This document shows, piece after piece, positions 4,026 to 63,712 of a stretch of 64,000 bases of DNA. Source of the stretch: Haliotis cracherodii (taxonomy: Eukaryota); contig NW_027266275.1 of assembly GCF_022045235.1 (NCBI RefSeq), forward strand, positions 25,110,001 to 25,174,000. The letters run 5' to 3'. The notes under the pieces are model-generated. The model worked only from the letters and a program-made list of their open reading frames with translations, did not search any database and was not told the origin of the DNA. Every line of letters begins with the position of its first letter. Positions within the stretch are counted from its first letter, which is position 1. A program made the translations under genes and the position numbers.

Positions 4026-7000
4026 ATGGATATAAAAGTTGTTGTACTACTTCTACTGTATGTGGTTGGTCATGTAGTGTCTGTGCCGCCGAGGCAGTGT
4101 CCTGACACGTCTGTGTGGAGGGCTGACCTGCACGGGTGTGTTCCCTGTAAGCACCTGTGTGGACATACGGATAAACGCACCTGTCCAGGGGAATGTTGGA
4201 GTGAGTACAAGTCTTTTAACTTTTCACTTATTTTGGCGTCGTTGTGATATGTTGGACATGTATTACATGATTGGCTAATTGGACATCTGTGAATTAATTG
4301 TTATGATGTTGTCATGAGAACACGTTCATTTCCTTGTGGTATATATTCATACTATGGAAAGGAACAAATAATGTATACATTTTAACTCGACCCATCTATT
4401 TGAATGGATATCTATATGATAGTTTAAGGTTTCTGTTGGTGTATATTCAAATATAAGCCATAAATCCTTTCCATAATCATAAGAAATATGCACGTAGTTA
4501 TTCCTTTTTCCTTTCTTACATTTAAAAAATACCCGTGAAGATCCAGGTTAGAAAAGGTCTTCAGCAACCTTTGCTTGTCGTAAGGGGCGACTAACGGGAT
4601 CGGGTAGTCAGGCTCCCTGACCGAGTTGATCGTATTCATCGTATCCCAAATGCGTCGATCGATGCTCATGGTATCAATCACTGGCTTGTTTACCCCAGAC
4701 TCAATTATTTACAGACCGGGGTCATATAACTGTAATATTGCTTAGTGCAGCGTTAAACAACAAACAAACAAAACATTTTGAAAAACAACCCGTGATGTGT
4801 TATCGTTCCAATAGATTCCCATGTAATGTGACAAAAACCCTACCCATGTCACTGTCAATACACTGGCAACATACAAAACAATGAGTATCGTTCTCACACA
4901 ACATCCTGGGTGTAAAGTACATGGAACTGTACTTGTATAATGATGCGGTATTGCCCTCGGGGTCATAAAACTTCCGCGTCTAATAATAGCGCATACGTGT
5001 CTTCAGTGCGTGTCCAGGTGTTTGCAATGGTAAAGACAGTACACATACATTGTAAGAATGTCTGCAGACTATTGATAAGCTTGTAACTAATTCTCCTCTG
5101 TTTGCCATCTTTACAATTTGTGGTTTGATATATTATGCTTCAATACAGTACAATGAATGTATTGAGAGGGGCCATTGAGAGTACATATTTTGTCAGCGAA
5201 CTGATTCGTGAATCTAAGGGAAAACACGACATCTATTTGACCTTCATATACTCACAGCACTGAATATTCTTCTTAAGCATTCGTTCGTTCCGTCGTTCGT
5301 TCGTTCGTTCGTTAGTTCATTAATTATATTTCCTTTCCAGAGAAAGATGTTGTCGGATCACGCCAGAAGTCCCAGCGCGTACGTCGAAGTGGACGCGGCA
5401 GATATAAACGCGATGATGGCGACTGTGAAGACTTCTACTACTACGACAACGCTATCCACCGATGTACACCGTGTGACCACTTGTGCGATCACCACGACTA
5501 CCAAGGAACTACACAACGTTGCATGGAGAAATGTCCTGGTAGGATTTCGTTATGGCATCTAATATTCCATGTGTATTTTTTTAAGAAAAATTGCATATTA
5601 ATCTTTTTTTTCATAATTCATGGATAATGAGGCTGGGTGTCATTGATGGTGGCTTCATGCGATATACTTGTATTCTATGAAGAGAATATTGGAACTTTAA
5701 TCCACTACTATAGCCGCCTTAGTTTTTATTTCTTTAAATGATTATAAAGTTTATTGCGGGTTGTTTTTAACAGATTACTATGCAAGGATGGAAGCTACGA
5801 CCAGTTCAAAAGAGGAAAGATCAACAACGGATATTAGTTCTGACGATTCCAAAGCAGACGCTACCTTAACTGTAATATTAATCAGTTTGCTGTTAGTGTT
5901 AGCTCTGTCTGTTGGAATAATTGTTTGGAAGCGGAATCAAATTTGGCAGTTCCTGGAGAGTCTGTGTGCCACCGAGGAGGAGAAAACCTCTGTACCCTGC
6001 TCTGAGGAAGAGGGTATCTGCGAGTTCACCAATTCCAAAAGTGAGTAGCACTATTTCTGACACCCTTGGGGGAGGACAGAAACCTATGATCCTGGGTTCG
6101 AATCCCAGATTCGTCATGATTATGTTTCAAGACTTGCCAGCACCAAACCCAGAGCGAGTGTAAGACCAGGGCCCACTTGCACAAAACGATCTTAGCGCTA
6201 AGACTATTGCCTATGTTAAAGTATGGGAGTTAAGATCATCTTAGCGCTAAGATCGATTTGTGCTAGTTATGCTCAAACATGCTTAAGATACAGTCGGAAT
6301 CGTATAACGGGCTCTGCTTTTATCAAAGATTCCTTAGGATTATATAAATGGTTGTGTCGCTTTTGATTAAAGCAAACTCACTCACTGCCTGCCATAATGC
6401 ACCAGCATCCCATGCTTGCCGTAAATGGCGACTATGCTTGTCGTAAGAGGCGATTAACGGAATCGGGTGGTCAGGCTCACTGACTTGGTTGATGCATGTC
6501 AATTGCGTAGATCGATGCTCATGATGTCAATCACTGGATTGTCTGGTCCAGATTATTTACTGACCGCCGTCATATAGCTGGAATATTGCTGAGTGCGGCG
6601 TTAAACAACAAATAAAAAAACAAACAAGCAAAGCAACTCTACAGACATTTGCGATGCGTCACATTTATGAATGATGTGTAGGCCAAATCCTCATAGGTTG
6701 CCTCAGTGATCGTTCAATAAAATTGACAAGGAAATGTAAGTTGCTGCATCTATCGAACGCCCATGGTAATTATCGTACCTCGAATTTTCTACTTTGTTTT
6801 TTCTTCCTGATCTTTGTCATGACAAGAGTATAAACTGCGGGCACAAGAAAGTATACACTTGAAAACTGAATTTGAACAAAACTTACAAACGTTATCAAAA
6901 CGTTACTCGGCTGACCTGCTGTGAGATACTCATTGATGTGATGCATGTAATATCGCCTATGATAACCGTATCAAATCAGCATCGATTTACCATTTCTTGT

Positions 7001-7874
7001 TTGTTTCATGTTTAGCCATCATCAAAAAATGAGTGTGTATAATTTTTGCTCGGCAGTGTAGCTATGTTTGTTTGTTTTGTTTGTTGTTTAACGCCGCACT
7101 CAGCAATATTCCAGCTATATGACGGCGGTCTCTAAATAATCGAGTCTGGACCAGACAATCCAGTGATTGATATCATGAGCATCGATCCACCAATTGGGAT
7201 CGATGATATGCTTAAACCAAGTCAGCGAGCCTGACCACCCGATCCCGTTAGTTGCCTTTTACGACAAGCATAGTCACCTTTTACAGCAAGCATGGGTTGC
7301 TGAAGACCTATTTTACCCCGGAATCTTCACGGGTTCAGTGTAGCTATGTAAAGACAATGGATTCCTATACATGTATTTACTAACTCCGAGGGTGTTTGTT
7401 ATCGAGAGGACCACAGGTCAAACACAAACCATCAAACAAACCTGATACTGATTATTCATAAGCTCATGTTTTAATGGTATTTAAATATACTCGATGTTCA
7501 CATATATAATTAACATTGTTATTGTATTCTCCATCTTGACAACTGTTCCTTTGTTAATTTCAGCCCCTTTAACCCACTCCCTTGGACCAATATGTCAGCC
7601 GGAGACCGAAGCTCATCATGAGAATACAGCAGACAGGTATCCGTACATTGAGAAGTTTGCTGAGATTGACCTACGGTATGCAGTGTTGGATGAACCCCTC
7701 ACAAGCCACGCTACCACCCCCAAGGAAACCTATTCCTCGGATCACACCACTCTGACATCCTTCTCCAACCACTCGACCACCCCCAAGCAAACCTATTCCA
7801 CTGATGACACCAATCTGACAACCTACACCAGTCACTCGACAATCCCCAAAGTTGTTGATGCTGCTGAGCACTGA
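4026..7874 (+). CDS. G1: TACI/BCMA/Grindelwald-type TNFR-like receptor, signal peptide + 2 CRD + TM + ITIM tail (~316 aa); exons 4026-4200, 5341-5538, 5774-6040, 7564-7874
   Basis: Canonical GT/AG sites, all phase 1, with an open frame across the four exons (951 nt). Signal peptide MDIKVVVLLLLYVVGHVVS; CRD1 CPDTSVWRADLHGCVPCKHLCGHTDKRTCPGEC; CRD2 CEDFYYYDNAIHRCTPCDHLCDHHDYQGTTQRCMEKC; TM LTVILISLLLVLALSVGIIVW. Collinear with G2. Confidence 0.85.
4531..4775 (+). mobile_element. SINE-like family A (non-tRNA head), full length
   Basis: Starts ACCCGTGAAGATCC and ends GCGTTAAACAACAAAC; about 20 complete or partial copies in the window. Confidence 0.85.
6405..6630 (+). mobile_element. SINE-like family A, 5' truncated
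   Basis: Clear match to the family A body and (ACAA)n tail. Confidence 0.8.
7068..7335 (-). mobile_element. SINE-like family A, full length, 14-bp target-site duplication
   Basis: TSD cagtgtagctatgt at 7054-7067 and 7336-7349. Confidence 0.9.
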
Positions 7875-7969
7875 TAAAACACACTCGTGGGTGTACCAAG
7901 GAAATCACAGGGCCGTCAGTCATGAAATCTAACGGAAAACGAGTAGCGATCAAAGTACAACTAACACAG

Positions 7970-8200
7970 GACCCGTGAAGATCCGGAGTAGAATAGGTCT
8001 TCAGCAACCCATGCTTGTCGTAAGAGGCGACTAACGGGATTGGGTTTTCAGACTCGCTGACTTGGTTGATGCATGTCATCGTATCCCTATTGCGTGGATC
8101 GATGCTCATGATGTCAATCATGGATTATGTGGTCCAGACTCGATTATTTACCGACCGCCGTCATAAAGCTGGAATATTGCTGAGTGCGGCGTTAAACTAC
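7970..8200 (+). mobile_element. SINE-like family A, just 3' of the G1 stop codon
   Basis: Full 5' end GACCCGTGAAGATCCGG through GCGGCGTTAAAC. Confidence 0.85.
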
Positions 8201-9011
8201 ATGAAACTGAAACGTTTTCTAGACACTTCTTGAATTATTGTTGACAATATACATTTTAGTTAAACAACAAACAAACAACTGCCACAGGAATGATACTCAA
8301 TGGCCAGATATGACACTAAGTCTTTCTTTGAGTGATTTGAAAGATGTCAACCACATGTTTAATGTATATATCTTGAATTGAGTTGAGCTTTCTCATGCGC
8401 ACTTGTAACTTTCCCTTATTTGATAAGCTATGCAATGATCTGCTTGAGATATAGATAGGCATTATGATGTGCAGATGCACACGCTTCAGCGAATGTCATG
8501 TTTGCGAACGAGGTGTTGATGGTTAAATAGATCACGACTTGTTATTTTTAACGTGATGGCATTACATTAAATGTGAAGTTAGTTTTATTCGAAAGCATGC
8601 ATGTAATTAACTCATTACCGTTTATGGATGATAATGTTCTTATAATATTCTACATTCTGTACGTTAGCTAGGACAAGCATATCAGCTGAATAGTGGATAC
8701 TCTCTCATATCTACGTTATACATATCCTATATACCTACACATTGTTTTGTTAAAAATCTATTCATCCTATGTTTGGAGAGTGAGTGAGTGAGTTGGGTGT
8801 TATTCCGCATTAAGTAATATTGCAACCATATCATGGCATATTGTGTGTTATTGTCGCATTAAATAACCTCCTTTGTGGCAATAGTTGTGTGCCAGTGTGC
8901 ATCTCATCACTGCCGATTAATATTTTCTGCCAATACGTGTTCTACGGCTATTTACTTAAGGATCAGTAATCAGTGGCCTGAAACACATCTATAATACAGA
9001 ACGGATTTTAT

Positions 9012-9346
9012 AGCGGTAGAATAAGTCTTCAGCAACCAATACTTGCCGTTAAAGGCGACTGTGCTTGTCGTAAGAGGCGACAAACGGGATCGGGTGGTCA
9101 GGCTCGCTGACTTGGTTGATGCATGTCATCGTATACCAATTGCGTAGATCGATGCTCATGATATCAATCACTGGATTGTCTGGTCCAGTCTCGATTATTA
9201 TCAGAACTCTGTGTTATAGTTGTAACATTGTAAAGTGTGTTTTAAACCAACAAAACATTGAGATTGGTCCAGACTCGATTATTTACAGACAGCCGTCATA
9301 TAGCTGGACTATTGCTGATTGCGGCGTTAAACAACAAACAAACAAA
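9012..9346 (+). mobile_element. SINE-like family A with duplicated 3' part
   Basis: Family A body; the tggtccag..cgattattta segment occurs twice. Confidence 0.75.
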
Positions 9347-9873
9347 CACTACAGCGTCTGTGTGGCTACGTCTGCAATGGCTCTTTGTCTCAGACATTCT
9401 ATTAACAAAGATTCAGTTGACATTTACAAATGTACTTTTTAAATACTCGTGATAACTCTTCTGTATGCTGACTTAAAAAGTACATTTGTGATGTTTGTTC
9501 ATTTGCACAATACAAATATTGACGCATGCATATAGCAATGTACAGTCATTCATTATCATGTTATTCATTATTCTTGTATCGTGCTTACAATTTACACCTG
9601 TTAACATTTTTAATTGAATTCAATACTGTTACAATCATGTAAGACGAACATTTATTAAAAAAATATTTTGTTCATTTCGTTGTTTTTCTTAATTTCATTT
9701 TTGATCAAAACAAGATAAACGTGCCAGAAAAAACTTGCCATCAGTAGTATTTCTGTAAAACAGCGGATTAAGTCAGGGGATCAATATTAACTGCAGGGGA
9801 AAAGAAAGTATACACTTTCTAAAAATGCAACAAATACGAATTGATTATTCGATTGTGATGTGGTATCATTGTA

Positions 9874-10280
9874 GACCCGTGAAGATCCGGGGAAGAATAG
9901 GTCTTCCACTACCCATGCTTGCAGTAAAAGGCGACTATGCTCACAGGGCCACGGATAGCCACACTATACTGACTGTACTGATTACATTAAAAAAAGAGAA
10001 GGGAGGACACCTCCTAATGTAATCAGTACAGTCAGTATAGTGTGGCTATCCGTGGCCCTGTGACTATGCTTGTCGTAAGAGGCGACTAACGGGATCAAGT
10101 GGTCAGGCTCGCTGACTTGGTTGAAGCATATCATCGATCCCAATTGCGTGGATCGATGCTCATGATATCAATCACTGGGATGTCTGGTCCAGGCTCGATT
10201 ATTTACAGACCGCCGTCATATAGCTGGAATATTGCTGAGTGCGGCGTTAAACAACAAACCACCACCACCAACAACAACAA
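9874..10280 (+). mobile_element. SINE-like family A interrupted by a MITE
   Basis: Flanks gtatcattgta / gtatcatagta look like a TSD; the body is split at 9942-10062. Confidence 0.85.
9942..10062. mobile_element. 121-bp palindromic MITE, 48-bp perfect TIRs, 8-bp TSD (hAT- or P-type)
   Basis: Arms 9942-9989 and 10015-10062 are exact reverse complements; TSD actatgct at 9934-9941 and 10063-10070. Confidence 0.9.
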
Positions 10281-10609
10281 GTATCATAGTAGTGTTAAGG
10301 ACCTTAAGTTTGCAGTGTTTCGGCGACTGTTTCCAGACGATTTTATAACGATTTTATAACGTTTGTGATTTTGTTGAAAAAAAAATTCACGTGTATACTA
10401 CCTTTAGTCGGCAGTTTATATCCTGATCAACATAATCAGTTATATCCAAAGATAATTTGAACGGCCCGCCACGATTGAGTGGATGTTTACGTAGTACACC
10501 ACGTGGTTTCAAGCATATGACTCCCATTCAAGTTCAGATCACTCGTGTTTACGTGCTTATCACAACTGTCAAACAGCGTTCGGAACAGAACACAGCGTAT
10601 GTATTGAGC

Positions 10610-13600
10610 ATGGACGTCAGATATCTTCACAGGGTCTGCTTGATCTTGTGTTATCTCATCGTACAACTGTCCTCGGTTATTGCGGAATGTCCAGTTGATA
10701 GTATTTGGAGTAACCATGCACGGAAGTGTGTATCTTGTGTTGATGTCTGCGCCCTCGCACGTGGATCGGATTGTTTCAGTCGGTGTCTGGGTGAGTCAGT
10801 TTGTCATTATTCCCCAATTACTACGCCATTTGACGTTTTATTGTTCACATTCATGATTGACCTTGGCCTGGTGCCATTCCAGTAACACTGGCGAAGGAAG
10901 TTGACCTGTTTAGGTATGTCATACATGACGAAATCCCCGCCATCATCGTCTGGCACGGTGCCAATTTTTTTCGCGACTACGCTGGTGTGTTGGTAATCGA
11001 TTGCTATGGTAACTGGTTATGTTTCGGTAATGTGATTTATAGATTCCATTCAATGACAGCTTTATCGACGATTGTGAGATAATAATTAACCAAACTATTT
11101 TACTCACATTATATGATCAATCGCTTATTCACGATTAAGGGATTGATATTTCATTGAGTGAAAAAATGAAAACACTGTGAAAAAGAATCATTGTGTCAGG
11201 CGAACGTACTGATTGTTTACTGTAGTGGAAATACCAAACATTCCCTGATGTAAACAACTCACATGACTCGACACAAGCCTCGGTATCGAAATGCACCCAA
11301 TGACCTTCGCTACTACAACGTGGCGTGATACGATTTGTCGAAGGTGTTTAGACGGAAGAAAGGCATTAAGCTATTGTTCTAGGTTACGACGCAGTTGCAA
11401 GTGTGATCATGTAAACAAATCATGATAGTGACATCGATACAAAAATAACCTTCAAATCGGAATTTGTATGTTTTCTGCGCTTGTTTTCGTGTATACATTG
11501 AATGTATGGTTTTAATAACTGTTTGTGTGTAAATTATGTTATCGTACATTGCAGGTTAAGGTTGAGTGGGTACATGAACGTTAAGTCTCTTAAAACATAA
11601 TTTTGATTGAAACAAACAACTAATTTTAAACTGAAAAGGAGCCCCTGTGAGATGGTCGATTGAATCTGTGGAAAATTTAGACTTGCTTCATTCACACAAT
11701 ATCATTACAGTAATGGATGGGCGGAAGGGAAACTAATATGGTTCAGGGACAGCGAGACAGACTAGCCACGTTGGTTGCGATGCTTATTACGTCACTGTGG
11801 ATTATCACAGAGAAAACAGCAAGGGCGGGCATTCAATTTGGGGAGAGAGTTAGTATGTTTTTGCGCAGATTTCAGCAATATTCCAGCGATATCAAACCAG
11901 AAATGGGCTTCACACATTGTACCCATGTGGGGAATCGAACCCGGGCCTTCGGCGTGACAAGCGAACGCTTTAACCACTAGGCTACCCCACCGCCCATTTG
12001 GGAAGAGAACCGAGGTCTGCGGCTTAGTACAACCACCCGTTCAAGTTGAGGGCGGTCGGGTAGCCTAGTGGTTGAAGCGTTGGCTCGTCACGCCGAAGAC
12101 CCGGGTTCGATTCCCCACATGGGTACAATGTGTGAAGCCCATTTTCCGGTGTCCCCCGCCGTGATATTGTTGGAATACTGCTAAAAGCGGCGTAAAACCA
12201 TACTCACTCACTCACTCGCTCACCTTTAACTTGAATGCAGACGTGATCATAAGTGAAGTTGGAAAATTGAATACACTTGTTTGTGTTTATTTGTATCAAA
12301 TAACAGATTATTTAGAGTATTAGCTTGATCTCTGTTGAAGTATATGTGTTATATAAGTTCAGGGATGTGGTAATAGGTGTCAGTGAGGACTATTTTAAGT
12401 GACCACAGGTTTACATCATGACACTTTAAATCCCGCTTACGTGTAAACGAAGTTAGCAGGCATTAAACAGAAGGGCAAATCAGATGAGGATATGGCCTAC
12501 ACATCATTCATAAATGTGACGCATCGCAAATGTCTGCAGACAAGAGTTGCTTAGCTTGTTTATTATTTTATTTGTTGTGAAACGCCGCACTCAGCAATAC
12601 ACCAGCTTTTTGACGGCGTTCTGTAAATAATCGAGTCTGGACCAGACAATCCAGTGATTGACATCATGAGCGTTAATCTACGCCATTGGGATAAGATGAC
12701 ATGAATCAACCAAATCAGCGAGCATGACCACCCGATCCCGTTAGTCGCCTCTTACGACAAGCATGGGTTGCTGAAGAACAATTCTAACCCGGAATCTTCA
12801 CGGGATGAGTATTTTTGCGCCCCTGACATATTCATGGCACTCTCGGTAAATAAAGGAATATATTGTGCGCATGCCTGTTTTCAGTAACTGCGTGTTGCGC
12901 TAGGAAAATAAGGGAACCGTCAATCTGAGTACACAATTATTTTATTTTCAGGGACATCATCGGCGTCTGATACCTCGGGATTGACTAGGGTTCGTCTTGA
13001 TGTTTTCGGTCAGAAATGCATCAACGTCGTATGCCTGGACTTCTCCTACTGCGACCCCGGGGTAGGGGAGTGCACGCCCTGCGACCAGCTGTGCGACCAC
13101 CACCGCATCCAGGGTACAACGGAACAATGTCGACACAAGTGCCCAAGTAAACTCATCTAACATGTATTTGAATAGCAACAAATAATGTTTTCGAGAAAAC
13201 TCAATAATCTTAAAATAGATATTTTCTAAATCGATTTTCGTTTCATTTACTTAGTCTCTTTTAGATCGTGTTCAAAATGTTTCCTGATATATGGATACTT
13301 TAGGAGATGATATGATGTGACGTCATTGTGATCAGTTATCAGAAGTCAAATAAAATAGATCATATGATCATGGAAATAATTAAAACGAAACTTTCAGAGT
13401 ACTTCAACCGTATGGAACGTGTGACAACAGAAGCTCCACGCACTGATGTTCTACGTCGCAGCACCTCCGTGGAGCCTAGAGACACCAGCACGCTTCCTGA
13501 TGCCCGGCAACAGGACCACAGTGTGGCTTCAAGCGACGAGTTCAAATTTAGCGTCGTGACGATTGTAATTGTGATCATTCTGGCGGGTATTGCGGTACTG

Positions 13601-15175
13601 CTGTGGAAGACAAAGTATCTGGCCAAGATGTGTCGCCCCACCCCACAGCCAGAAGAACAGAAGTCATCTCTACCTTGCTCGCAGGAAGGGGAAGGCGATC
13701 TCATCAATTCTCGAAGTAGGTCTGCGTATGAATATTAGCAGTGGTTGCAGAAGTCTTAGTAGCAGTCGTAGCAATAATTGTATTTCTAGTAGCAGTAGCA
13801 GTAGCAGTAGCAGTAGTCGAATCACTAGTAGTAGTAGTAGTAGTAGTAGTATAGTAGTAGTAGTAGTAGTAGTAGTAGCAGTGGTCAATGCAGTTATTAT
13901 CCCCCGGTTTGAGTGAGTGAGTGAGTGAGTTGGTTTTAACATTATTCCAGTTATATCACGGCGTGTCAGCTTAATGTGGGAGGAAAGCCCGAAGTAATGC
14001 AGGTCTCAGACGTTTACCACTTCGGTGAAACCCACGAGCACGGGTATGGTGCTGACAAACCTAGAAACATAATCTGGGCGAACCGGGATTCGAACCCACA
14101 ATCATAGGTTTCTGGCGTGCCCAAGGGACGCAACTCTGCACAGCGAATCGCGGCGTCTTAGACGACTGGGCCACCCGTGCCCCCTCCCCCCGGTTTGAAA
14201 AACGAGGGAATATCGCGATCAACATATCCGTCAGTCCGTTTTTCGTTTACAGAGCAGAACTAAAGAAAACGTTAAATATTTCTTTTTGAAACTATATGGA
14301 TCATTCAGTGATGGCTTTTGATGATTTGGGATCATTTTTTATTAGATAATTTTTTTCATGATGGCAGGTTGGACATGAAACGAGGTAGTGCTCGTTTCCG
14401 GAGCAGACATCCAAAACTGTTGAATATTGCTGGATGAAACTTGCTATGCAGCTCAGTCTGGTGGTAAACTGGGGCCTTTTAATGATTTGGGATTTTTGAA
14501 GAGTACTGAACAGCATTTTTTTTTCTTCACTGAACTGAAGGTATCCAATGGCAAAGAACCAACACTAGTCATAGCAATAGTCGCTGCAGTTGTAGTTTAA
14601 TCAGCAGTAGTAGATAGTGTAATAGTTAAAGTAGTGAAAGAAGTAAGAGTAATAGTCGTAGAGTAGTAGAAGTATTGATAGGAGTTGAAACAGCCCTAAG
14701 AGTTGTACTAAGAGTGTAGTTTTCATAGTGGTAGATACTGTAGTGGGGTTACTGTAGTCCGGTCAATAGTATTTACAAAACTCTGTCCATAAGCGTTAAT
14801 ATATCTTTTGTAAAAGCAGAAGGGTTGAACCTCCGAAAGTTGTCTCCCTTGAATGTTATCACATGAAGACCAACTGTTCTGCTTCTATTCAAAACAGTAA
14901 GTTTGAACAGACCGTATTATCAATTTGCAAAACTAACAATTACTGACGCTTTATATATCCATTGTCCTTCAGCTCCACTAACTGCACCACGTGGTCCCAT
15001 TGCCCAGGAAAAGAACTTCCCGAGTGCAGAAAGTGGACATCAATCAGACCACACCGTAGACCTGGGGGTGGAGATGGGCCACCCCGAGATATGCATCCCT
15101 TATACCGAGGTGGACGGCCCCGGCACACAATCTACTGCACCAAAACGCTGTGTTGATGATCGGCTTGTGTTTTAG
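10610..15175 (+). CDS. G2: TNFR-like receptor, signal peptide + 2 CRD + TM + ITIM tail (~298 aa); exons 10610-10790, 12952-13146, 13398-13715, 14973-15175
   Basis: Phase-1 GT/AG junctions, 897 nt open frame. CRD1 CPVDSIWSNHARKCVSCVDVCALARGSDCFSRC; CRD2 CINVVCLDFSYCDPGVGECTPCDQLCDHHRIQGTTEQCRHKC; TM FSVVTIVIVIILAGIAVLLW. Exon boundaries are homologous to G1 (NSK|TPLT vs NSR|TPLT). Confidence 0.85.
11850..11996 (-). mobile_element. SINE family B (tRNA-Asp-like head)
   Basis: Reverse complement of the 12049-12222 copy; A box TAGCCTAGTGG, B box GGTTCGATTCC. Confidence 0.85.
12049..12222 (+). mobile_element. SINE family B (tRNA-Asp-like head)
   Basis: Pol III A/B boxes; GCTCGTCACGCCGAAGACCCGGGTTCGATTCCCC resembles tRNA-Asp(GTC); (CTCA)n tail. 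Confidence 0.88.
12556..12804 (-). mobile_element. SINE-like family A, full length
   Basis: Reverse complement of the family A consensus. Confidence 0.85.
13758..13880. repeat. (AGT/AGC)n trinucleotide microsatellite in G2 intron 3
   Basis: Seen directly; it produces the poly-S/V/L/T ORFs in the track. Confidence 0.95.
13913..14184 (-). mobile_element. SINE family C (tRNA-Leu/Ser-like head with long A-B box spacing), full length
   Basis: A box TGGCCCAGTCGTCTAAG, B box GGTTCGAATCC, (CTCA)n tail; TSD cccccggtttga on both sides. Confidence 0.88.
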
Positions 15176-15702
15176 CTTCAATGTGTCATGTAGCTATATG
15201 GTCAGAAACATCCTTGTATCATGTCAAACGTGCTGTCAACTACACACAAGGTATGCATGGTTACCCCCTAGAGATTTGATCATTCCACAATCTCCAAAAT
15301 TTATTCGCCGATCTATTAGTTATTTTTTCAGGCTAATTTGGGGTAAAATTGATTTTTGGATTCACAGAGAAAAGGGGTCCAACTTCTAAAATAAATTCAC
15401 TTTTAGAAGTCACATTTTATGATTCAAATCAATGTAATTTCATTTTCTATCTTCGAGAATGGCCCAGTGAAGATCGGTTGCCACCGACAGGTCGGGTAGG
15501 GTCCTGACTTGGTTGATGCATGTCATCGTTTCCCATTTGCGTAGATCAATGCTCATTATGTCAGTCACTGGATTGTCTGGTCCAGACTCAATTATTAACA
15601 GAACGCTGTGTTATAGTTGTAATATTGTAAAGTGTGTTTTAAACCAACAAAACATTGAGATTGGTATTGAGATTATATTATTAATGTGAGAAGTTATAGA
15701 GA

Positions 15703-18264: not shown

Positions 18265-20980
18265 TGTCGACATGAGGGTGTCGTGATTTAACACAGACAT
18301 AGTTGATTTTACACTGTCGTGATATTACTGAGACACAGATAATATAATAGAGTCGTGATATAACCGTGACACAGCTGACATTACGGTGTCGTGCTATAAC
18401 AGAGATACAGTTAACATGACAGTGTCATGATATAACCGAAACACAGTTGACACGAAAGTGTCGTGATATAACAGAAACAGTTGACATTAAAGAGTCGTGA
18501 TATAACAGAGACACAGTTGACATGAAAGTGTCGTGATATAACCGAGAGACAGTTGAGATGAAAGTGTCAGATATAACCGAGACACAGTTGACATGAAAGT
18601 GTCGTGATATTACCAAGTGACAGTTGAGATGAAAGTGTGAGATATAACCGAGACACAGTTGACATTAAAGTGTCGTGATTTAACCGAGACACAGTTGAGA
18701 TGAAAGTGTCAGATATAACTGAGAGACAGCTGACATTAAAGTGTCGTGATATAACTGAGATACAGTTAACATTACAGTGTCATGATATAACCGAGAGACA
18801 GTTGAGATGAAAGTGTCAGATATAACCGAGACACAGTTGACATGAAAGTGTCGTGATGTAACCAAGAGACAGTTGAGATGAAAGTGTCAGATATAACCGA
18901 GACACAGTTGACATGAAAGTGTCGTGATATAACCGAGACACAGTTGACAAGAAAGTGTCGCGATATAACCGAGACACAGTTGAGATGAAAGTGTCAGATA
19001 TAACCGAGACACAGTTGACATGAAAGTGTCGTGATATAACCGAGACACAGTTGACATGAAAATGTCGTGATATAACCGAGACACAGTTGACATGGAAGTG
19101 TCGTGATATAACCGAGAGACAGTTGACATGAAAGTGTCTCGATATAACCGAGAGACAGTTGACATGAAAGTGTCGTGATATAACCGAGAGACAGTTGACA
19201 TGAAAGTGTCGCGATGTAACCGAGACACAGTTGACATGAAAGTGTCGTGATATTACCAAGTGACAGTTGAGATGAAAGTGTCAGATATAACCGAGACACA
19301 GTTGACATGAAAGTGTCGTGATATAACCAAGAGACAGTTGAGATGAAAGTGTCAGATATAACCGAGACACAGTTGACATGAAAGTGTCGTGATATAACCG
19401 AGACACAGTTGACAAGAAAGTGTCGCGATATAACCGAGACACAGTTGAGATGAAAGTGTCAGATATAACCGAGACACAGTTGACATGAAAGTGTCGTGAT
19501 ATAACCGAGAGACAGTTGACATGAAAGTGTCGTGATATAACCGAGACACAGTTGACATGGAAGTGTCGTGATATAACCGAGAGACAGTTGACATGAAAGT
19601 GTCTCGATATAACCGAGAGACAGTTGACATGAAAGTGTCGTGATATAACTGAGAGACAGTTGACATGAAAGTGTCGCGATGTAACCGAGACACAGTTGAC
19701 ATTAAAGTGTCGTGATTTAACCGAGACACAGTTGAGATAAAAGTGTCAGATATAACCGAGACACAGTTGACATGAAAGTGTCGTGATATAACCGAGACAC
19801 AGTTGACATGAAAGTGTCGTGCTATAACTGAGAGACAGTTGACATGAACGTGTCGTAATATAACCGAGAGACAGTTGACATGAAAGTGTCGCAATGTAAC
19901 CGAGACACAGTTGACATTAAAGTGTCGTGATTTAACCGAGACACAGTTGAGATGAAAGTGTCAGATACAACCGAGACACAGTTGACATGAAAGTGTCGTG
20001 ATATAACCGAGACACAGTTGACATGAAAGTGTCAGATAGAACCGAGACACAGTTGACATGAAAGTGTCGTGATATAACCAAGAGACAGTTGACATGAAAG
20101 TGTCGTGATATAACCGAGAGACAGTTGACATTAAAGTGTCGTGATATAACCGAGAGACAGTTGACATGAAAGTGTCGTGATATAACCGAGAGACAGTTGA
20201 CATGAAAGTGACGTGATATAACCGAGAGACAGTTGACATGAAAGTGTCGTGATATAACCGAGAGACATTTGATATGAAAGTGTCGCGATGTAACCGAGAC
20301 ACAGTTGACATTAAAGTGTCGTCATTTAACCGAGACACAACTGGGATGAAAGAGTCAGATATAACCGAGACACAGTTGAGATGAAAGTGTCGTGATATAA
20401 CCGAGACACAGTTGACATGAAAGTGTCGTGCTATAACTGAGAGACAGTTGACATGAAAGTGTCGTGATATAACCGAGAGACAGTTGACATGAAAGTGTCG
20501 CGATGTAACCGAGACACAGTTGACATGAAAGTGTCATGATATAACCGAGACACAGTTGACATGAAAGTGTCGTGATATAACAGAGACACAGTTGACATTA
20601 AAGTGTCAGATACAACCGAGACACAGTTGACATGAAAGTGTTGTGATATAACCGAGACACAGTTAACATGAAAGTGTCAGATATAACCGAGACATAGTTG
20701 ACATGAAAGTGTCGTGCTATAACAGAGATACAGTTAACATTACAGTGTCGTGATATAACCGAGAGACAGTTGAGAAGAAAGTTTCAGATATAACCGAGAC
20801 ACAGTTGACATGAAACTTTCGTGATATAACCGAGACACAGTTTACATGAAAGTGACTTGATATAACCGAGAGACAGTTGACATGAAACTGTCGTGATATA
20901 ACCGAGACACAGTTGACATGAAAGTGTCAGATATAACCGAGACACAGTTGACATGAAAGTGTCGTGATATAACCGAGACA
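18265..20980. repeat. Minisatellite, 36-bp unit gatataaccgagacacagttgacatgaaagtgtcgt (35-bp variant), about 75 copies
   Basis: Head-to-tail units without unique spacers; gives 12-aa periodic spurious ORFs. Confidence 0.97.
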
Positions 20981-21132
20981 CACACACACCCACACCCAGC
21001 AGCGACACTTCGACATAAAGATGTGTTACATAACCACCTACACAGATACAATACATTGGTACTGACACTATAATGTCAAACAAAAGTTGAACACAGGTGG
21101 CATGACATTGGGTTCGAATCCCATTTCCGCCA

Positions 21133-21440: not shown

Positions 21441-24007
21441 ATTTTCGCCATGACTGTGATTCTTGGTTTGTCAGAGCCTTTTCCCGGCGAACGTCAAAGG
21501 CTTGCAACACTTTTGGCGCCCCCCACCTGTAAACTGGCACTCCGTGATATTAGTAACATCCTGAGTATAACCCTTCTCATTCGTTCACACCTCAATATTA
21601 TGTTTTGTATTACTTATCTCCTTTCTTATACCGCCGTCATATAGCTGGAATATTGCTGAGTGCGGCGTTAAACAACCAACCAACCAACCAACCTTTCTTA
21701 TACGCAGAGGGAGCGATCGGTCTGAATCAAATAATATAATCAAAAAAGAAAACGACATGCCTGTGGTTGAGAACACAAACGACAAGCTGTCTGTTGTAAG
21801 TAATTTACTATATGTACACACATGGTGTCGGTGTCATCTGACCTGGACAATATTTTGGATCAATATATGCAGAATCCCGCTTGAGAAGAGGAGCAAGGTA
21901 TGGATTTATCTTGGACTATTTCCCCAGCTCAAAATAAATTCAAAAATGTAATTTTAAGTCGGAATTTTGTATACTTTATAATAAAACTGTGTAAGCAATT
22001 ATCGTATAGGTGTGGGATTTATTTGAAATGAATGTCGCATTTTCAAACCCGGATCCTATTCATGCTGTGATGAACCGGTAGAAACCAAAGCTCTATACAA
22101 ATAAGGGCATTGTGATTCCGAGATGACGTTGTAGGGCGTGTCGGCTAACACACTGACCCGGTGACACACTGACACACTGATACCTTGTCTGACCCGGGTC
22201 ACCATGACCTGCCGGGTATGTCGTGCCATACGTTTATCCATACACCAACAGTATGTGTATCAGAGCCATAAATAGATAGGAACTATTACGAAAGATCATG
22301 TGATGACACAGTGACACACTAACACGCTTCTGGCCTGGGTCAACGTGCCCTATTAAATTCTAATGCTAGAAATATCGGCTAGCGGTTACAGTGCATATAC
22401 GTAGGAACGTGAACATATGAAACAATATGAATATTCTCGTTTTGAAACAATCTCAATGACAAGACGTTCCGTGAAAGGACAAAAGAAAGATAACGCATGA
22501 ATTTGGAATTATATATGTTTTTAACAATTTCAAAGGTAATTTCAACGGTTATGGGCCGGGAACACCATATTTGAATAGCTGATAGTCCCTGGAACAGATG
22601 TATAAACGATCGTAGAAGGTTATCATTGTGATGAAGTCGAGGGTAGGGGGGGTGATGCTGACTGACCAAGGTTCATAATCGAGGTCAGACTTTGGGTCTA
22701 AACCGACCATAGAGGTGTCTGACGTTTCTAGGTCAGTGGGTCAGTCGTGTCCGCCCTCAAACCCTCGGTTTCATGTTTTTAGCGGTGATACTTGTGTCAG
22801 TATGGGGTGCCTTTGTTGGGTGCCTTTGTGTCCTATTAGAAGAAATCTCCCCGTTATACCACTTCGAACACGTCATCATTGAAACAGTTTCGGCTGTTAT
22901 GGTATTTGCCTTTACAATTTTGAAAAATACATTTCGTGGAATATTGAAATGTGTAAAATACATAATGCTGCATAACTTTAATAATCATGGTTAAACGTTA
23001 TATGACTTCATACCACAGCCAGTTCCATGTATAGACCGGGTTATGTATTGACTTTGTGTTGACCTCAGGGCATGATGCACAATACATGGCGACCACCATG
23101 TACTCCAATGAAACTATCGTTACAGTGGACGTACTTTTATAATAATACATACACGTCCCTGTGTGGTATTTCTAAAAATCTGAGAAAGAAACACACGATT
23201 GCCCTTTGAACTAACATGTCTTTGAGAAACCTGTTTAATGAATGTGAAAACCCTGTGTGGGGGCGGGATGTAACCTGAACGGCGTACGTAACACTGGTAC
23301 ACAACACCCACGTGGCGATAGTGCTGACTGTTCATCGCTGGTTAATCAAGTGCGCATGTTTTTCAACCTACATTAAGCTAGAGTTTGGCTTTCTACTGGC
23401 TGAGCCTTCATACCGATTGATTTCAGAGCGCAGAGAAACGGAGAAGGGCTTTACGCAGGTAATGATTTATATTTTGCGTTTAAAGACGAAAGACAAGACG
23501 AATTGTCTATTTGTTGGGATACGATGACATGCATCAACCAAGTAAGCAAACCTGACCACCCGATCCCGTTAGTCGCTTCTTACGACAAACATAGTCGCCT
23601 TTGACGGCAAGCATGGGTTGCTGAAGACCTATTCTACTCCGTATTTTAAATGAATTGTGAACATGACACGTATTGTAATGCGTACTTTTGGAGTGAGAAT
23701 TAGGTGAGTGAGCGCATGTTAATTTACGATAAAGTAAAAAATATTCCAGTTATATCACAGCCATTAATCGAGCCCGGGTGAAGCAACAGGTGGTTGCTAC
23801 ACGTCACATACATCTCCCACCCTATGGTCATCAGCATCTGACCGGAATCCATGCAGCCCGATTTTTCCTGTCGTACGTCTCAATACCGGACATTGATGTA
23901 TATTCCCAAACGTTAATACTGAGCATACTGAAAATGCAAACGTCTACAAACATGATGTTTGCAACAGGACTAGCTATCAGATGTAATTGTGTCGAATTCC
24001 ATTTGCA

Positions 24008-24950
24008 CACAGACACTGACACACAGAGAGACTGACACACACACACACTGACACACACCGACACTGACACATACAGACACTGACACACAGACACTGACAC
24101 ACATACACTGGCACACACATTCACTGACACAGAGACACTGGCACACACATACACTGACACACAGACACGGGCACACACATTCACTGACACAGAGACACTG
24201 GCACACACATACACTGACACATACAGACACTGACATATACAGACACTGACACACATAGACACTGACACATACAGACACTGGCACACACATACACTGACAC
24301 ACTGACACACACATACACTGGCACAGAGACACTGACACACACATACACTGACACACAGACACTGACACACACATACACTGACACACACAGACACTGACAC
24401 ATACAGGCACTGACACGTACAGACACTGACACATAGAGACACTGACACACATAGACACTGACCATACAGACATTGACACACATACACTGACACACACATA
24501 CATTGACACACAGACACTGACACACACATACACTGACACACACAGACACTGACACATACAGGCACTGACACGTACAGACACTGACACATAGAGACACTGA
24601 CACACATAGACACTGACCATACAGACACTGACACACACATACATTGACACACAGACACTGGCACACACATACACTGACACACACATACACTGACACACAG
24701 ACACTGGCACACACATATTCACTGACACAGAGACACTGACACATACAGACACTGACACGTACAGACGCTGACACATACAGACACTGACACACACACACAG
24801 GCACTGAAAGAGACAGACACAGACACTGACACACACAGACACTGAAACACACTGACACAGACACACACTGACACACACACTGAAAGAGACAGCTAGTGAC
24901 ACACACACTCACACACACAGACACTGTCACACAAAGACTGTGACACATAC
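24008..24950. repeat. Compound (AC)-derived satellite (acacagacactgacac..)
   Basis: Low complexity; source of the Cys/Val-rich minus-strand ORFs. Confidence 0.95.
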
Positions 24951-26554
24951 AAACACATTGAAGCACACGAAACATATCCTCCATATATATGATGCATGTT
25001 ACCTCTTTATCAAGTCAAAACAGGCCACAATAGATCACGAAGATCCATTTCTCCTAACATGGGTGGTATATTCATCCTAATAAACATATTGCCATCATAA
25101 TACCAGTATTATGGCAGAGTGATTTGTTTGTTCACATGGACAGGTATCTGTGTGATCAAATGCCAATTCTAAAGCACATATTGCGTAAAAGGCAAACCGC
25201 CCATATGGTACATACAGTACTTTTACTTCCTGGTAATAGAGAGCAATACGAGTGCATGACACTGGCACACACATACACTCTGTCATGTTTGCCTCCTGCT
25301 TGCATGAGATGCGCTCTGAGAGCCGCTCGTAATTTACATAAAGGGAACACGTGAACCTAACACTGACACTATTGCCGAACACTGACATCATTACATTTCT
25401 ATAGGGCTGTCTCAATATAGATACCCATTCAGATTTAGTCATGATCACAAAACATGACCTTTTCATGCGACAGAAATTTGGTTACTTGTTAGCATGACTG
25501 TATCTTTCGACGTGGGGATTTCTTGAGGGGTGTCAGTTAACCGTATTTACCAACATCGTTACCATTTGGATGAATAGTCCTGGTCCTCATCAATGTTTAT
25601 TTGACGTCAAACTCTTTTCAGTCATTACTGTATGTTCCATCTTCCCGAGGCAAGGGAATGATCATAAAAGTCCACTTTTCACCCTTGCCAAAGTAGGCTG
25701 CAATTATGGAGTTATATTTTGGCTGGACTAAAGAGTCCATGCATAATCCAATCAAAAACGCGTAACGAACTAGACATCCGGTTGGTAAACATCATGGATT
25801 TCAACGTGCAAATTACGGTCGGCTGCAGGATTTGCCATGCATTTGTACCGCCAACTGGGCGACGACAGATATTTTGCAAATCTATTCATGTTTTTAATCA
25901 AAGTGCTTAAGTGATTTGATGCACTTCGCGTGGTAAGACCCGTTTCATTATAATATAGATAATTATTAATCGATCAGATCGTCGTCACTGGGCGCCGCCA
26001 TTTTCTTTGAAGGTGTTGTATGTTCCTGGGTGGTGCAACTGCACGTGGACGTCTGACAATATCCGGAAGGAAGTGATGTAGCAATATTTGAGTATAGTGT
26101 TCATCTAGTGACAACTTGACAAAATCTTCTAACCCTGACACAGCCGAAGCCACATGGCGGTAGTTTGTAATCTGGCGTCGCGTTCAGGGTAAGCTGCCAA
26201 TAGGTGTAGAGATAGACATGTGACACAGAAAGTCAAGGACTGACATATTGGCACATTGACAAGCAGAAACGTTTGTACGCCTACTGACAACACAACATCA
26301 AGGAACTTTATACAACCAGCATTGTCAAAGTTCAGATCCTACACTCTATTGGTCTGTATAACCTCTTGTAAACCACATAGTTGCAACAAGAACGTTCCAC
26401 GATACAGGACAAAACTAATGACACACAGGAACAGTCTCGTCAATGCCTCGTCTTGGCTCGGTGACCTTGCTACATTTATTATATCTCGAAACGATTTCCG
26501 CCGGAAAGCTTAGTTCGTTCAAGCCTTTTATCATAATTGTACTAAATGGAAATT

Positions 26555-41054: not shown

Positions 41055-41055
<1 letters not shown>

Positions 41056-41130: not shown

Positions 41131-41131
<1 letters not shown>

Positions 41132-42333: not shown

Positions 42334-42378
<45 letters not shown>

Positions 42379-42564
42379 CCTCGACGCTGATAACATGTTC
42401 TAAATCGGACTTGTGACACCGTTCTTTCAGCCGGCGTTTTTTTTACTGCTCTCTTCACTAACAGCCGTGAATCACAGCCCATCCCATATTGTGCAACACA
42501 ATAAAACGCGCTGTATATTTTTCAAGCTAGCATTATCGCGGCCCTACGTGGTAGTATTTCAGTT

Positions 42565-42599
<35 letters not shown>

Positions 42600-42757
42600 C
42601 TTCGACGCTGATAATATGTTCTAAATCGGACTTGTGACACCTTTCTTTCAGCCGGCGTTTATATTTACTGCTCCCTTCACAGCCCATCCCATATTGTGCA
42701 ACACAATAAAACGCGCTGTACATCTTTCAAGCTAGCATTATCGCGGCTCTACGTGGT
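42139..42757. repeat. Near-identical tandem triplication (~220-240 bp units, third truncated) with (GA)n tracts, directly upstream of G5
   Basis: Units at ~42139-42377, 42378-42597 and 42598-42757; duplicate ORFs 42182 and 42413 in the track. Confidence 0.92.
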
Positions 42758-62100: not shown

Positions 62101-63712
62101 ATTGGTGCAATGAGTGCACTATCAAATAGTGATGATACAATGTTCGCGGGAAGGTTAGCGTATCCTGCCCCACCGGTGGCACCCGTCACAAACAGCAAAA
62201 GCAAGTCAGTTGTTCACCTGAACAAACACGGGGACACACGGTACAAGTCAAATTAGGGAATCGCCACATATCTACCGTAAAACGTTTTGAAAGCTTTGAA
62301 AGCATTTAATGGTTTAGCCTTGATGAAACCACTTTTGAGCAAGAGTAGTTTGACGCTCTCTGCAGTCTTCACAAAGAGTAAGCATGTTTATACCTCAAAA
62401 GGTGCTGGAATATGGCTCTACATAAAGGGAAAAAGTTGACTATTGGAAAGTTGAAGTCATCCCTCTTGTTTTAGTCTTAATGTGAAACAGACGAGGTGGT
62501 TTCACTGGTATCCTGTTTGGCTATTGGCCGTTATTGAACGATATCAGATCATCCACAGACCTGAAGGTTTAGGTTAAACATCATGGCAAAAGTCCCGTGT
62601 TTTGATTTTGCACATTCCGTTTATATATTCCAATTCATAACTACATGTTTATCTATGGTCACCATGCTTAGAAACACATACCCCATGGATCAAGGCAAGG
62701 AGTTTTCCCTTAAGTGTGCCACGTGGGAGTACACAGCTGCAATGTTGTAACAAATACAGAATTACACTTGGTTCTGTTCAGAGATTGCAAGAATTTAAGC
62801 CAATCGTTTGAGTTTTTGAGAATCCACTTGGTATTAATCCCACTTGTCTCAAATACTTCATGTTGATATACAAGTCCTCCTTGAGACCCGTGAAGATTCC
62901 GGGGTAGAATAGGTCTTCAGCAACCCATGCTTGCCGTAAAAGGTGACTCTGCTTGTCGTAAAAGGCGACTAATGAGATCGGGTTGTCAGGCTCACTGACT
63001 TGGTTGATGTATGTCATCGATCCCAATTGCGTGGATCGATGCTCATGATATCAATCACTGGATTGTCTGGTCCAGACTTGATTATTTACAGACTGCCGTC
63101 ATATAGCTGGAATATTGCTGAGTGCGGCGTTAAACAACAAAGCAACCAAGCAACCAACCTTCCTATATTTTGTTAAGGAGTATGGTCAGGGATTTGGTGG
63201 TACATTTGCTCGACCCAGCAACATATATGTCTCTTGTACAAATTGTTATCGAGCTTTGGGTTCATGCAAAGTTGTTATGGGAAATATTATATTACTGGCT
63301 CATTGTTGTGTGCTCATTAATGTTCTTGCCAGTGAAGGTTCGGGGTAGAATAGGTCTTTAGCAACCGATTCTTGCTGTAAAAGGCGACTTCCTTGCCGTA
63401 AGAGGCGACTAACGGGATCGGGTGGTCAGACTCCCTGGCTTGGTTGATGCATTTTATCGTATCCCAATTGCGTGGATCGATGCTCATGATGTCAGTCACT
63501 GGATTGTCTGCTCTAGACTCGATTATTTACAGACCACCGTCATATAGCTGGAATATTGCTGAGTGTGGAGTTGAACTACAAACAAACAAACTAACATTAA
63601 GTTTCTCTCTGTGTTCCCAGATGACCTGGCACCGTTGGAAGAAGAAGATCACAAGAACCCTATGGGATTCTCAGATTTGAATCTTACCATACAGAACAAC
63701 CCAGTGACGTAG
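53160..63712 (+). CDS. G7: TNFR-like receptor, signal peptide + 2 CRD + TM + TRAF-motif tail (~212-225 aa); exons 53160-53358, 55546-55671, 59853-60074 (or -60113), 63621-63712
   Basis: Signal MAPIEWFLPVQVLVTLGLWAGALWA; CRD1 CARGTYKDPIAGSCRECSSLCDRAEEQKTEPLCASYC; CRD2 CHPGSYFSVSLNACASCTVLCSQETKASECREHC; TM MVVLIVFIVIVVFILGIFGAVHLL; last exon ttcccag|DDLAPLEEEDHKNPMGFSDLNLTIQNNPVT*. All junctions phase 1. Confidence 0.8.
54985..55142. repeat. Long imperfect palindrome (probable hairpin MITE) in G7 intron 1
   Basis: aatctcacc..gtgtcttttgatatcaaatatatcaacac is mirrored by gtgttgatatatttgatatcaaaagacac..ggtgagatt. Confidence 0.85.
56160..56620 (-). pseudogene. Tc1-family transposase remnant
   Basis: Minus strand reads QARVTTPNEDRYLRTLHLRKRFLTV (N-terminal DNA-binding region) and WLRAVFTGESRFCLFTADGRLRDFGRRGE (degenerate W..VLFSDESRF..DGR motif). 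Confidence 0.85.
57331..57626 (-). mobile_element. SINE family C, full length
   Basis: Matches 13913-14184; TSD-like flanks gaaaagcacaacga / ggaaagcacaatga. Confidence 0.88.
57690..58600 (+). pseudogene. Second Tc1-family remnant, interrupted by a family A SINE (58067-58290)
   Basis: Reads KSVISRQCDKYRQTGGVAMRPVRGRPKK (GRPR-like linker) and DRPAKSSDMPP (degenerate WPAxSPDLNPIE). Confidence 0.65.
60265..61105. repeat. Minisatellite, ~23-bp unit gacgtaatacagacaccattgtt, in G7 intron 3
   Basis: Seen directly. Confidence 0.95.
62124..62590 (-). pseudogene. Penelope-like retroelement remnant, degenerate
   Basis: Collinear with 40430-41030 and 1921-2210 (ggaaagttgaagtcatccctcttgt; gcgtatcctgccc..ggcacccgtcacaaac). 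Confidence 0.65.
62885..63160 (+). mobile_element. SINE-like family A, full length
   Basis: GACCCGTGAAGATTCCGGGGTAGAATAGGTCTTCAG..GCGGCGTTAAACAAC. Confidence 0.87.
63329..63592 (+). mobile_element. SINE-like family A, ending ~30 nt before the last G7 acceptor
   Basis: Family A body and tail. Confidence 0.8.

Follow-up and report, generated by a model that had tools for sequence, protein, structure and literature searches.

A 64,000 nt stretch of the genome of the black abalone, Haliotis cracherodii (contig C12, 25,110,001-25,174,000; hereafter the window, to which coordinates refer unless marked C12), was analyzed following a preliminary description of a cluster of TNF-receptor genes in this DNA. 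The window very probably holds seven functional genes (G1 to G7) of mollusc compact TNF-receptor-superfamily proteins, which are part of a larger array and whose cysteine-rich domain (CRD) is homologous to that of BCMA, TACI, BAFF-R, Fn14 and Grindelwald (Grnd). Each protein has one or two CRDs of ~40 residues, a Ser/Thr-rich stalk, one transmembrane (TM) helix and a cytoplasmic tail that differs between the genes. The CRD is predicted to fold as a beta-hairpin followed by a helix-loop-helix, with three disulfides pinning it. Repeated local duplication on contig C12 would have given rise to the array and, since each CRD lies on its own phase-1 exon, duplication of CRDs within genes would also be possible.

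Ten CRD modules in seven spliced genes

The window was scanned in six frames for the pattern C-x12-C-x2-C-x3-C-x7..11-C-x3-C. Ten modules were detected, all on the plus strand, and the same six-cysteine pattern was found neither on the minus strand nor in the reversed sequence nor in 50 shuffles. The alignment of the ten CRDs is characterized by six common cysteines, a Tyr-Tyr-Asp (YYD) hairpin, Q-G-T ahead of the fifth cysteine and a terminal C-P-G. Nine of the modules have six cysteines and only the second CRD of G2 has eight; the C-terminal spacing x3/x11/x3 was present in seven of ten and the hairpin Asp in six of ten.

For gene finding, proteins from the profile search described below were mapped back to the window and the models were then refined at their splice sites. 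Joined spliced models served only for checks of frame and topology, while searches were run on exons or on identical database proteins (P0002, P0018, P0014, P0154). As the preliminary description had proposed from the letters alone, seven co-oriented spliced genes carry the ten CRDs, and all introns are GT..AG introns in phase 1. All seven genes keep open frames, the six CRD cysteines and one TM helix each. A Pfam scan of the full-length proteins G1, G3, G4 and a 98%-identical Haliotis rufescens ortholog of G7 returned zero domains, and the tails of these four likewise yielded no death domain. The claims of a single TM helix and of a missing death domain thus held, while that of a short tail held in part, as the tails range from 45 to 138 aa.

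G1 (4026-7874, plus strand, as all genes and CRDs below) consists of exons 4026-4200, 5341-5538, 5774-6040 and 7564-7874 and encodes 316 aa identical to XP_071107094.1. G1 is a type I protein in which a signal peptide is followed by CRD1 (4098-4196, from the pattern scan, with a short C4-C5 loop), a basic linker, CRD2 (5424-5534, from the pattern scan and the CRD search of the genome), a stalk, the TM helix (~residues 155-177) and a tail of ~138 aa. The linker (5341-5420) harbors two dibasic furin-type sites between the CRDs, RVRR and RYKR, none of which occurs in the G2 linker; as judged from these motifs, CRD1 of G1 might be shed. G2 (10610-15175; exons 10610-10790, 12952-13146, 13359-13715 and 14973-15175) was modeled as 311 aa with GT/AG junctions in phase 1, and its exon blocks match the Haliotis asinina ortholog P0009 at 54-81%. 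It contains a signal peptide, CRD1 (10688-10786, pattern scan and alignment), CRD2 (13032-13142), in which an extra hairpin cysteine and one 5 residues upstream bring the number of cysteines to eight, a TM helix and a tail of ~97 aa.

G3 (29970-34943; exons 29970-30099, 33956-34240 and 34891-34943) encodes 155 aa identical to XP_071107095.1. It has no signal peptide, and its CRD (29985-30095; pattern scan, alignment and structure model) begins at residue 6, in a predicted type III topology, followed by the TM helix and a tail of ~64 aa. G4 (37038-39071; exons 37038-37326, 37556-37609 and 38755-39071) is identical to XP_071107097.1, with 219 aa in RefSeq, one CRD (37212-37322; pattern scan, alignment, CRD model and fold search), a TM helix and a tail of ~45 aa. 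If translation starts at the Met at 37131, G4 has a normal signal peptide. The G5 model (42872-45048; exons 42872-42992 and 44711-45048; 152 aa) matches P0016 at 66-85% in its blocks and is again predicted to be of type III, without a signal peptide, with the CRD (42878-42988, pattern scan and alignment) at residue 3, a TM helix and a tail of ~60 aa.

G6 (48289-49532; exons 48289-48484, 48914-48949 and 49198 or 49225-49532) was modeled as ~180-188 aa, with a signal peptide, one CRD (48370-48480), a TM helix and a tail of ~49 aa; its blocks match P0019 at 71-74%. The acceptor of its last exon is ambiguous (49198 vs 49225), the better polypyrimidine tract being located at 49225. G7 (53160-63712; exons 53160-53358, 55546-55671, 59853-60113 and 63621-63712) encodes 225 aa identical to XP_071105496.1 (P0154), with a signal peptide, CRD1 (53244-53354, pattern scan and alignment), CRD2 (55563-55664), a TM helix and a tail of ~74 aa. 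In its exon 3 a duplicated AATGGTATG at 60074-60113 creates two alternative donors 39 nt apart, and RefSeq holds both the 225 aa isoform and one of 212 aa (P0152), which results from the upstream donor.

Taken together, G1, G2, G6 and G7 have a signal peptide, G3 and G5 lack one, and the status of G4 depends on the start codon; leaderless family members recur in other species. The models of G1, G3, G4 and G7 are 100% identical to H. cracherodii RefSeq proteins that are all titled 'uncharacterized protein', as had been expected. These four genes have orthologs in as many as three further species of Haliotis, including H. rufescens (LOC124152005, -07, -08 and -12) and H. asinina.

Spliced transcripts, which the preliminary description expected, were found for G1. 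One contig of 1179 nt aligned to 3919-4200, 5343-5537, 5773-6040 and 7564-7998, and the joint from 6040 to 7564 (GT..AG) was detected in three RNA-like runs from three studies. The DNA-like run X19 lacks this joint and continues through the introns.

The assembly contains a run of N at 33392-33708, inside intron 1 of G3 (30100-33955). Residues 1-43 of G3 are encoded at 29970-30098 and residue 44 resumes at 33956. As the gap is intronic and two orthologs from independent assemblies (H. rufescens P0158 and H. asinina P0178) read across this junction without an insertion, no coding sequence was lost in it.

Several short motifs were seen in the tails. ITIM-like motifs (immunoreceptor tyrosine-based inhibitory motif; [ILV]xYxx[ILV]) are present in G1 (LRYAVL, 7690-7710) and G2 (IPYTEV, ~15100-15120), whose tails are otherwise divergent apart from a common membrane-proximal box (…LPCS.E…NS[KR]TPLT…) that is split by the last intron. 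G3 (34060-34100) and G5 (44830-44870) have a juxtamembrane RLK[RK]QDCC box in common, ~10 residues past the TM helix, and its Cys-Cys pair could be palmitoylated. TRAF-type motifs were rejected, as acidic 4-mers such as TEEE and SEEE in G1 are too frequent by chance to count.

Kinship and predicted fold of the CRD

To our ten-CRD profile, 13 PDB sequences matched before any unrelated protein, and all of them were TACI, BCMA or Fn14; an unrelated cysteine-rich family with a better profile match, which had been named as an outcome that would speak against the kinship, was not encountered. When the same profile was run against 1.84 billion proteins, 158 matches were obtained at E<=0.001. Among the matches listed, 89 were pattern-bearing non-TACI proteins, every one of which with a named source came from a mollusc, and 14 were mammalian TNFRSF13B (TACI) clusters with E-values from 3.8e-7 to 3.5e-4 whose matches span the full domain in both CRDs. 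The named relatives are the gastropods Haliotis, Gigantopelta, Nucella, Babylonia and Littorina and the bivalves Mercenaria and Potamilus. A comparison of 131 family CRDs with 26 TACI CRDs by HHalign gave a probability of 97.7% and an E-value of 2e-12 over the whole domain. With a 35-member profile of two-CRD family proteins, PDB searches returned BCMA at E 4.6e-5, TACI at 0.0037 and Grnd at 0.37. A further profile built from a loose full-length alignment of the family gave 3 matches and was too gappy to inform.

Protein language-model neighbors of G3 were TACI (0.93), a mollusc cluster named 'TNFR-Cys domain-containing' (0.91), BCMA (0.91), BAFF-R (0.90), Fn14 (0.89) and Wengen (0.81). In Pfam, seven of the ten single CRD exons matched TACI-CRD2 below threshold (E 0.007-2), and the tenth, CRD2 of G7, also matched BCMA-Tall_bind and was the best single-sequence match to BCMA/TACI (E 0.006-0.007, below the cut-off). 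The 103 pattern-bearing matches, a tally that includes the 14 vertebrate TACI proteins themselves, hit BCMA-Tall_bind 27 times, TACI-CRD2 23 times, BaffR-Tall_bind 12 times, TNFR_c6 6 times and Fn14 twice, and no other CRD family recurred. TNFR_c6 (PF00020) was not matched by the ten CRD exons even at E<=10, nor by the four full-length proteins at the thresholds used, and its 6 matches among the 103 were weak. Full-length mollusc proteins scanned alone likewise remain below the Pfam cut-offs, which explains why the family is not annotated.

The hairpin residues are conserved in the register of TACI. Of 131 family CRDs, 85% have Tyr at the first hairpin position, 89% have Tyr, Phe or Trp at the second and 88% have the Asp. 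The hairpin Asp and aromatics are the most conserved non-Cys positions of the family. The x12 loop was found in 105 of 131 CRDs, and 111 of 131 have a C4-C5 loop of 11 residues with x3/x11/x3 spacing.

The fold of G3 was predicted with AlphaFold from an alignment of 89 non-TACI relatives that included no TACI sequence. The CRD was modeled as a hairpin with short helices at a predicted local distance difference test score (pLDDT) of ~95. Foldseek with this 155-aa model returned nothing at E<=0.001, and the ranking alone was used; the top 20 were all BCMA, TACI, Fn14, Grnd or BAFF-R, in line with the fold check that had been proposed. With VIA-align, the G3 model gave Z 4.6 for Grnd and Z 4.0 for BCMA (39/39 residues, 1.9 A). 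A CRD-only model, built from 29 abalone CRDs (pLDDT 92.1), was aligned without pre-filter to 48,161 PDB representatives. Seven chains reached Z>=2, namely Grnd (5.0; 40/41 residues, 2.6 A), BCMA (3.5 and 2.8), TACI (2.6), Fn14 (2.4), BAFF-R (2.2) and a conotoxin (2.0).

These searches also bear on whether the cysteine pattern might be convergent, an unrelated small disulfide-rich mollusc module having come to mimic the TACI/BCMA spacing. Spurious matches are common for short cysteine-rich domains, positions 2-18 of the profile (its first half) also match many large repeat proteins, and the individual Pfam scores are sub-threshold. However, the TACI matches cover the full domain and remain significant against the whole protein set, the HHalign probability is high, only compact TNFR CRDs ranked above the conotoxin in a fold search whose model contained no TACI, and non-Cys hairpin residues are shared with TACI in register. 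Convergence is therefore largely refuted and in our judgment very improbable.

The kinship claimed at the outset, i.e. that the CRD is the BCMA/TACI module and related to Grnd, was thus borne out by profile, HHalign, PDB, fold and language-model results, and these five kinds of evidence, which are independent of one another to different degrees, support homology to the BCMA/TACI/BAFF-R/Fn14/Grnd module. Some of the supporting detail given with it fared less well. The Asp of the Y-x-D hairpin is kept in the family at large and in six of the ten window CRDs. The string given for TACI CRD1 is indeed present in a TACI protein (P0085), but shares just 4-5 of 15 non-Cys residues with CRD1 of G1, to which it had been likened. 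The Pfam families put forward for a check, TACI-CRD2 and BCMA-Tall_bind, are those that were matched, with single proteins staying under the gathering cut-off.

Several observations weigh against the interpretation of the seven genes as TNF receptors of this class. CRD1 of G1 and CRD1 of G2 lack the YYD hairpin altogether. The gathering cut-offs of Pfam were not reached, the best window exon scoring 17.1 bits vs 27 for BCMA-Tall_bind (PF09257) and 16.8 vs 22.9 for TACI-CRD2 (PF09305). All structural Z-scores are <=5.0, which is unavoidable at 40 residues but weak in absolute terms, and the models gave secondary structure from which disulfide connectivity is not readable. At the Leu position of the Asp-x-Leu motif, the 131 family CRDs have V (25%), G (24%) or A (7%), Leu being outside the five commonest residues, and the following position is V/T/I; the ligand-contact motif of BCMA and TACI is accordingly half conserved in the mollusc family. 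The transcript evidence derives from public contigs placed on 3001-9000 of the window and hence covers G1 only. Finally, that the receptors of the array would bind TNF ligands is something we infer by analogy with the characterized members of the class.

The array beyond the window, its candidate ligands and selection

The seven genes of the window are about a quarter of a tandem array of ~312 kb. A CRD search of the genome returned 41 matches, 39 of which lie inside C12:25,048,832-25,360,567, with one match outside the array 2.1 Mb downstream. As far as 25.267 Mb the matches are on the plus strand, and past that point most of them are on the minus strand. In the 264 kb of the array that were read, 29 CRDs were identified. 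The six cysteines are invariant in all of these, and most terminate in C-P-G, where the phase-1 intron is located; the right-hand ~56 kb (C12:25,304,001-25,360,567) are represented by hidden Markov model coordinates only. Grouping by spacing suggests 22-24 genes in the 264 kb and ~30 in the whole array.

On other contigs, the same genome has tandem clusters with 60 matches to the TNF homology domain (THD) of TNF ligands, of which ~50 are near-complete. Classical TNFR_c6 matches number only 17 and are located elsewhere. The proposal of an expanded receptor family next to an expanded ligand repertoire was thus correct and, with 41 CRD and 60 THD matches, understated. Two dense tandem THD clusters were observed, one at G000:C7:33.86-34.07 Mb (~17 exons) and one at C67:38.12-38.26 Mb (~12 exons), and these are candidates for ligands that co-diversify with the receptor array. 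A further locus, L001 (G000:C67:34391830-34395237, minus strand), has a highly conserved THD exon that is 60-79% identical across gastropods and bivalves. Its strand A is split by an intron, with the first ~4 residues in the upstream exon, and the orthologs read PAAHLMGY. A protein search with this exon returned no full-length Haliotis ligand, such a ligand being outside the length band searched.

By analogy with the vertebrate and fly receptors, the aromatic-aromatic-Asp hairpin and the first helix would bind a trimeric TNF-family ligand in the groove that separates its protomers, and this ligand would be drawn from the 60 THD matches of this genome. The ligand trimer would cluster three receptors, and via adaptors the unrelated tails may give identical or similar ligands different outputs. 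A co-fold of three copies of the L001 THD (L001:1501-1968:-) with the G7 ectodomain (P0154 residues 26-110) scored 0.00; it was run without controls and with a ligand picked almost blindly among the 60 THD matches, and speaks neither for nor against binding. An ortholog of BAFF or APRIL was not identified.

Selection was assessed by comparing G4 with G6. Their CRDs share 31 of 37 residues (84%), whereas the remainder of the proteins is 19% identical. In the DNA that encodes the CRD, identity is 81-86% at codon positions 1 and 2 and 46% at position 3; that of introns and flanks does not rise above background. Since third positions and flanks have diverged to this extent, G4 and G6 stem from an old duplication with purifying selection on the CRD and without recent gene conversion. 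This argues that the CRD of G4 and G6 is functional and that both receptors, while differing in their tails, may recognize an identical or similar partner.

It was further considered whether most copies are decaying duplicates, i.e. pseudogenes or annotation artefacts, with one or two real genes among them. The restriction of the RNA data to G1 and an in-frame TGA in one CRD elsewhere in the array would fit such decay. All seven window genes, however, keep their frames, six cysteines, canonical splice sites and TM helix, four have RefSeq models together with orthologs in other Haliotis species, and the G4/G6 CRD is under purifying selection, which makes decay of most copies hardly credible.

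The ligand side leads to a different question, namely whether the proteins have retained a TNFR-type CRD fold without being signaling receptors for TNF-family trimers. They would then form a diversified recognition family that re-uses the scaffold for microbial or other cell-surface partners, or as decoys or co-receptors. The replaced Leu of the contact motif, mutually unrelated tails without a recognized signaling domain and the fast divergence of some members between Haliotis species (54-81% for the G2 ortholog), which resembles that of immune recognition families, are in favor of this possibility. Yet every characterized compact-CRD protein (BCMA, TACI, BAFF-R, Fn14 and Grnd) binds a THD trimer (PMC8024323), the contact-making Asp and aromatics are the best-conserved non-Cys positions, and a very large THD ligand family is encoded in the same genome. 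We consider a recognition family of this kind distinctly unlikely and favor receptors for TNF-family ligands.

A more far-reaching interpretation of the receptors as TNF receptors is that the array of ~30 genes and the 60 THD matches form a combinatorial, co-diversifying cytokine or recognition network, including paired receptors, as an invertebrate analogue, on the BCMA/TACI scaffold, of the paired activating and inhibitory immune receptors of vertebrates. Pairs of this type would combine one CRD under purifying selection with unrelated tails, as in G4/G6, or set the ITIM-like tails of G1 and G2 against the others. We regard such a network as rather unlikely.

Apart from the genes, the window contains several repeats. 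A 36-bp satellite at 18269-20982 (~76 copies, 87% matches) takes up a large part of the 15 kb between G2 and G3, a 16-bp CACACAGACACTGACA microsatellite lies at 24006-24956 and a 41/102-bp satellite block at 50518-51474. Three long minus-strand open reading frames (ORFs) were rejected as genes because they are located inside satellite arrays: 19352-19894 falls into the 36-bp satellite, and 23831-24984 and 50487-51527, together with spikes in GC skew, are due to the CACACAGACACTGACA microsatellite and the 41/102-bp satellite, respectively. At 42167-42757, Tandem Repeats Finder detected 2.7 copies of a 231-bp unit that are ~90% identical, with some stretches identical; the repeat ends ~115 bp upstream of the start codon of G5 and may reflect duplication of a promoter or 5' region. 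A 23-bp tandem repeat (60267-61118, 38 copies) lies in intron 3 of G7. Interspersed repeats resembling short interspersed nuclear elements occur in introns and intergenic regions at 4530-4800, 6400-6640, 7000-7340, 7970-8220 and 9010-9370, and further copies of the family at 10060-10300, 15500-15680, 39890-40150, 58050-58300 and 62890-63610. Their summed depth in RNA-like contigs reaches ~2e5, and many contigs stop sharply at 6612 and 7970. Positions 64-120 were rejected as a fragment of a family gene, since no CRD follows the 94% match over 16 aa to P0052; this segment adjoins a repeat also found at 14118-14180 and 57563-57628 and is probably a remnant or repeat-derived.

Relation to known compact TNF receptors

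The present analysis names ~30 abalone genes that RefSeq calls uncharacterized and proposes a function for them that can be tested. CRDs of the compact BCMA/TACI/Grnd type outnumber the classical TNFR repeats of this gastropod (41 vs 17) beside a very large TNF ligand family, and the array offers a compact system for how the specificity between TNF ligands and receptors diversifies. Its genes are also candidate immune genes of the black abalone, an endangered and disease-afflicted species. The receptor class and its pre-vertebrate age were already known and the accepted view is unchanged; new is this particular tandem array, which is unannotated and very large and includes members with several CRDs, leaderless members and pairs that share a CRD.

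By sequence and hairpin the family is nearest to BCMA and TACI, and by the length of the helical half it is nearest to Grnd. With BCMA (TNFRSF17) and TACI (TNFRSF13B), which also gave the best sequence matches, it has in common the six-cysteine spacing (x12, x2, x3, a variable loop and x3), the aromatic-aromatic-Asp hairpin in register, the beta-hairpin and helix-loop-helix fold, and the architecture of one or two CRDs, a short stalk and a single TM helix without a death domain. G3 and G5, moreover, lack a signal peptide like the type III receptors BCMA and TACI. On the other hand, the C4-C5 loop of the abalone CRDs has 11 residues with a Q-G-T motif vs 6-8 in BCMA/TACI, V/G/A and V/T/I stand in place of the Leu-Leu that follows the Asp, the tails are unrelated, most abalone members have a signal peptide, and the genes form an array of ~30. 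A BCMA/TACI array comparable to that of the abalone is not known from vertebrates.

Grnd (PDB 6ZSY/6ZT0), which is likewise an invertebrate receptor and carries one compact CRD, was the best structural match and has the same spacing in its C-terminal half, C-x3-C-x11-C-x3-C, as well as the CxxCxxxC signature. It was described to have eight cysteines, arranged in an X2 hairpin with two disulfides and a C2 module of this spacing, and to lack the Asp-x-Leu motif through whose hairpin BCMA, TACI and BAFF-R contact their ligands (PMC8024323). In contrast, all window CRDs but one have six cysteines and the hairpin Asp is kept in the abalone family, and the sequence similarity to Grnd is not significant (E 0.37). 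The A1-D2 modules of BCMA/TACI and the C2 modules of Fn14/Grnd also differ in their C-terminal disulfides, which are interleaved (3-5/4-6) in the former and nested in the latter. Fn14 (TNFRSF12A), BAFF-R (TNFRSF13C) and Drosophila Wengen appear as compact single-CRD TNF receptors on the sequence, fold and language-model lists, but with scores under those of BCMA, TACI and Grnd; the CRD of BAFF-R is partial and Wengen is the most distant (0.81).

Expanded TNF and TNFR families have been documented in molluscs (Zhang et al., 2015, PMC4346834; Quistad & Traylor-Knowles, 2016, PMC4979521). In a 2026 preprint (bioRxiv 10.1101/2024.07.27.603686), 'grnd-like receptors' were defined as those whose compact CRD bears the signature CXXCXXXC. 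They were reported from Mollusca, Annelida, Cnidaria and other phyla, where particular lineages have expanded them alongside their Eiger/TNF ligands. That the class predates B cells, as put forward in the preliminary description, was already known from fly Grnd and Wengen and from this survey. The definition of grnd-like receptors fits the abalone proteins as well. Haliotis, however, appears in the preprint only in a citation, and a genomic array, multi-CRD members and a mix of type I and type III proteins are not described there. With ~30 genes, the abalone array exceeds the largest expansion of that survey, the 12 paralogs of the annelid Capitella.

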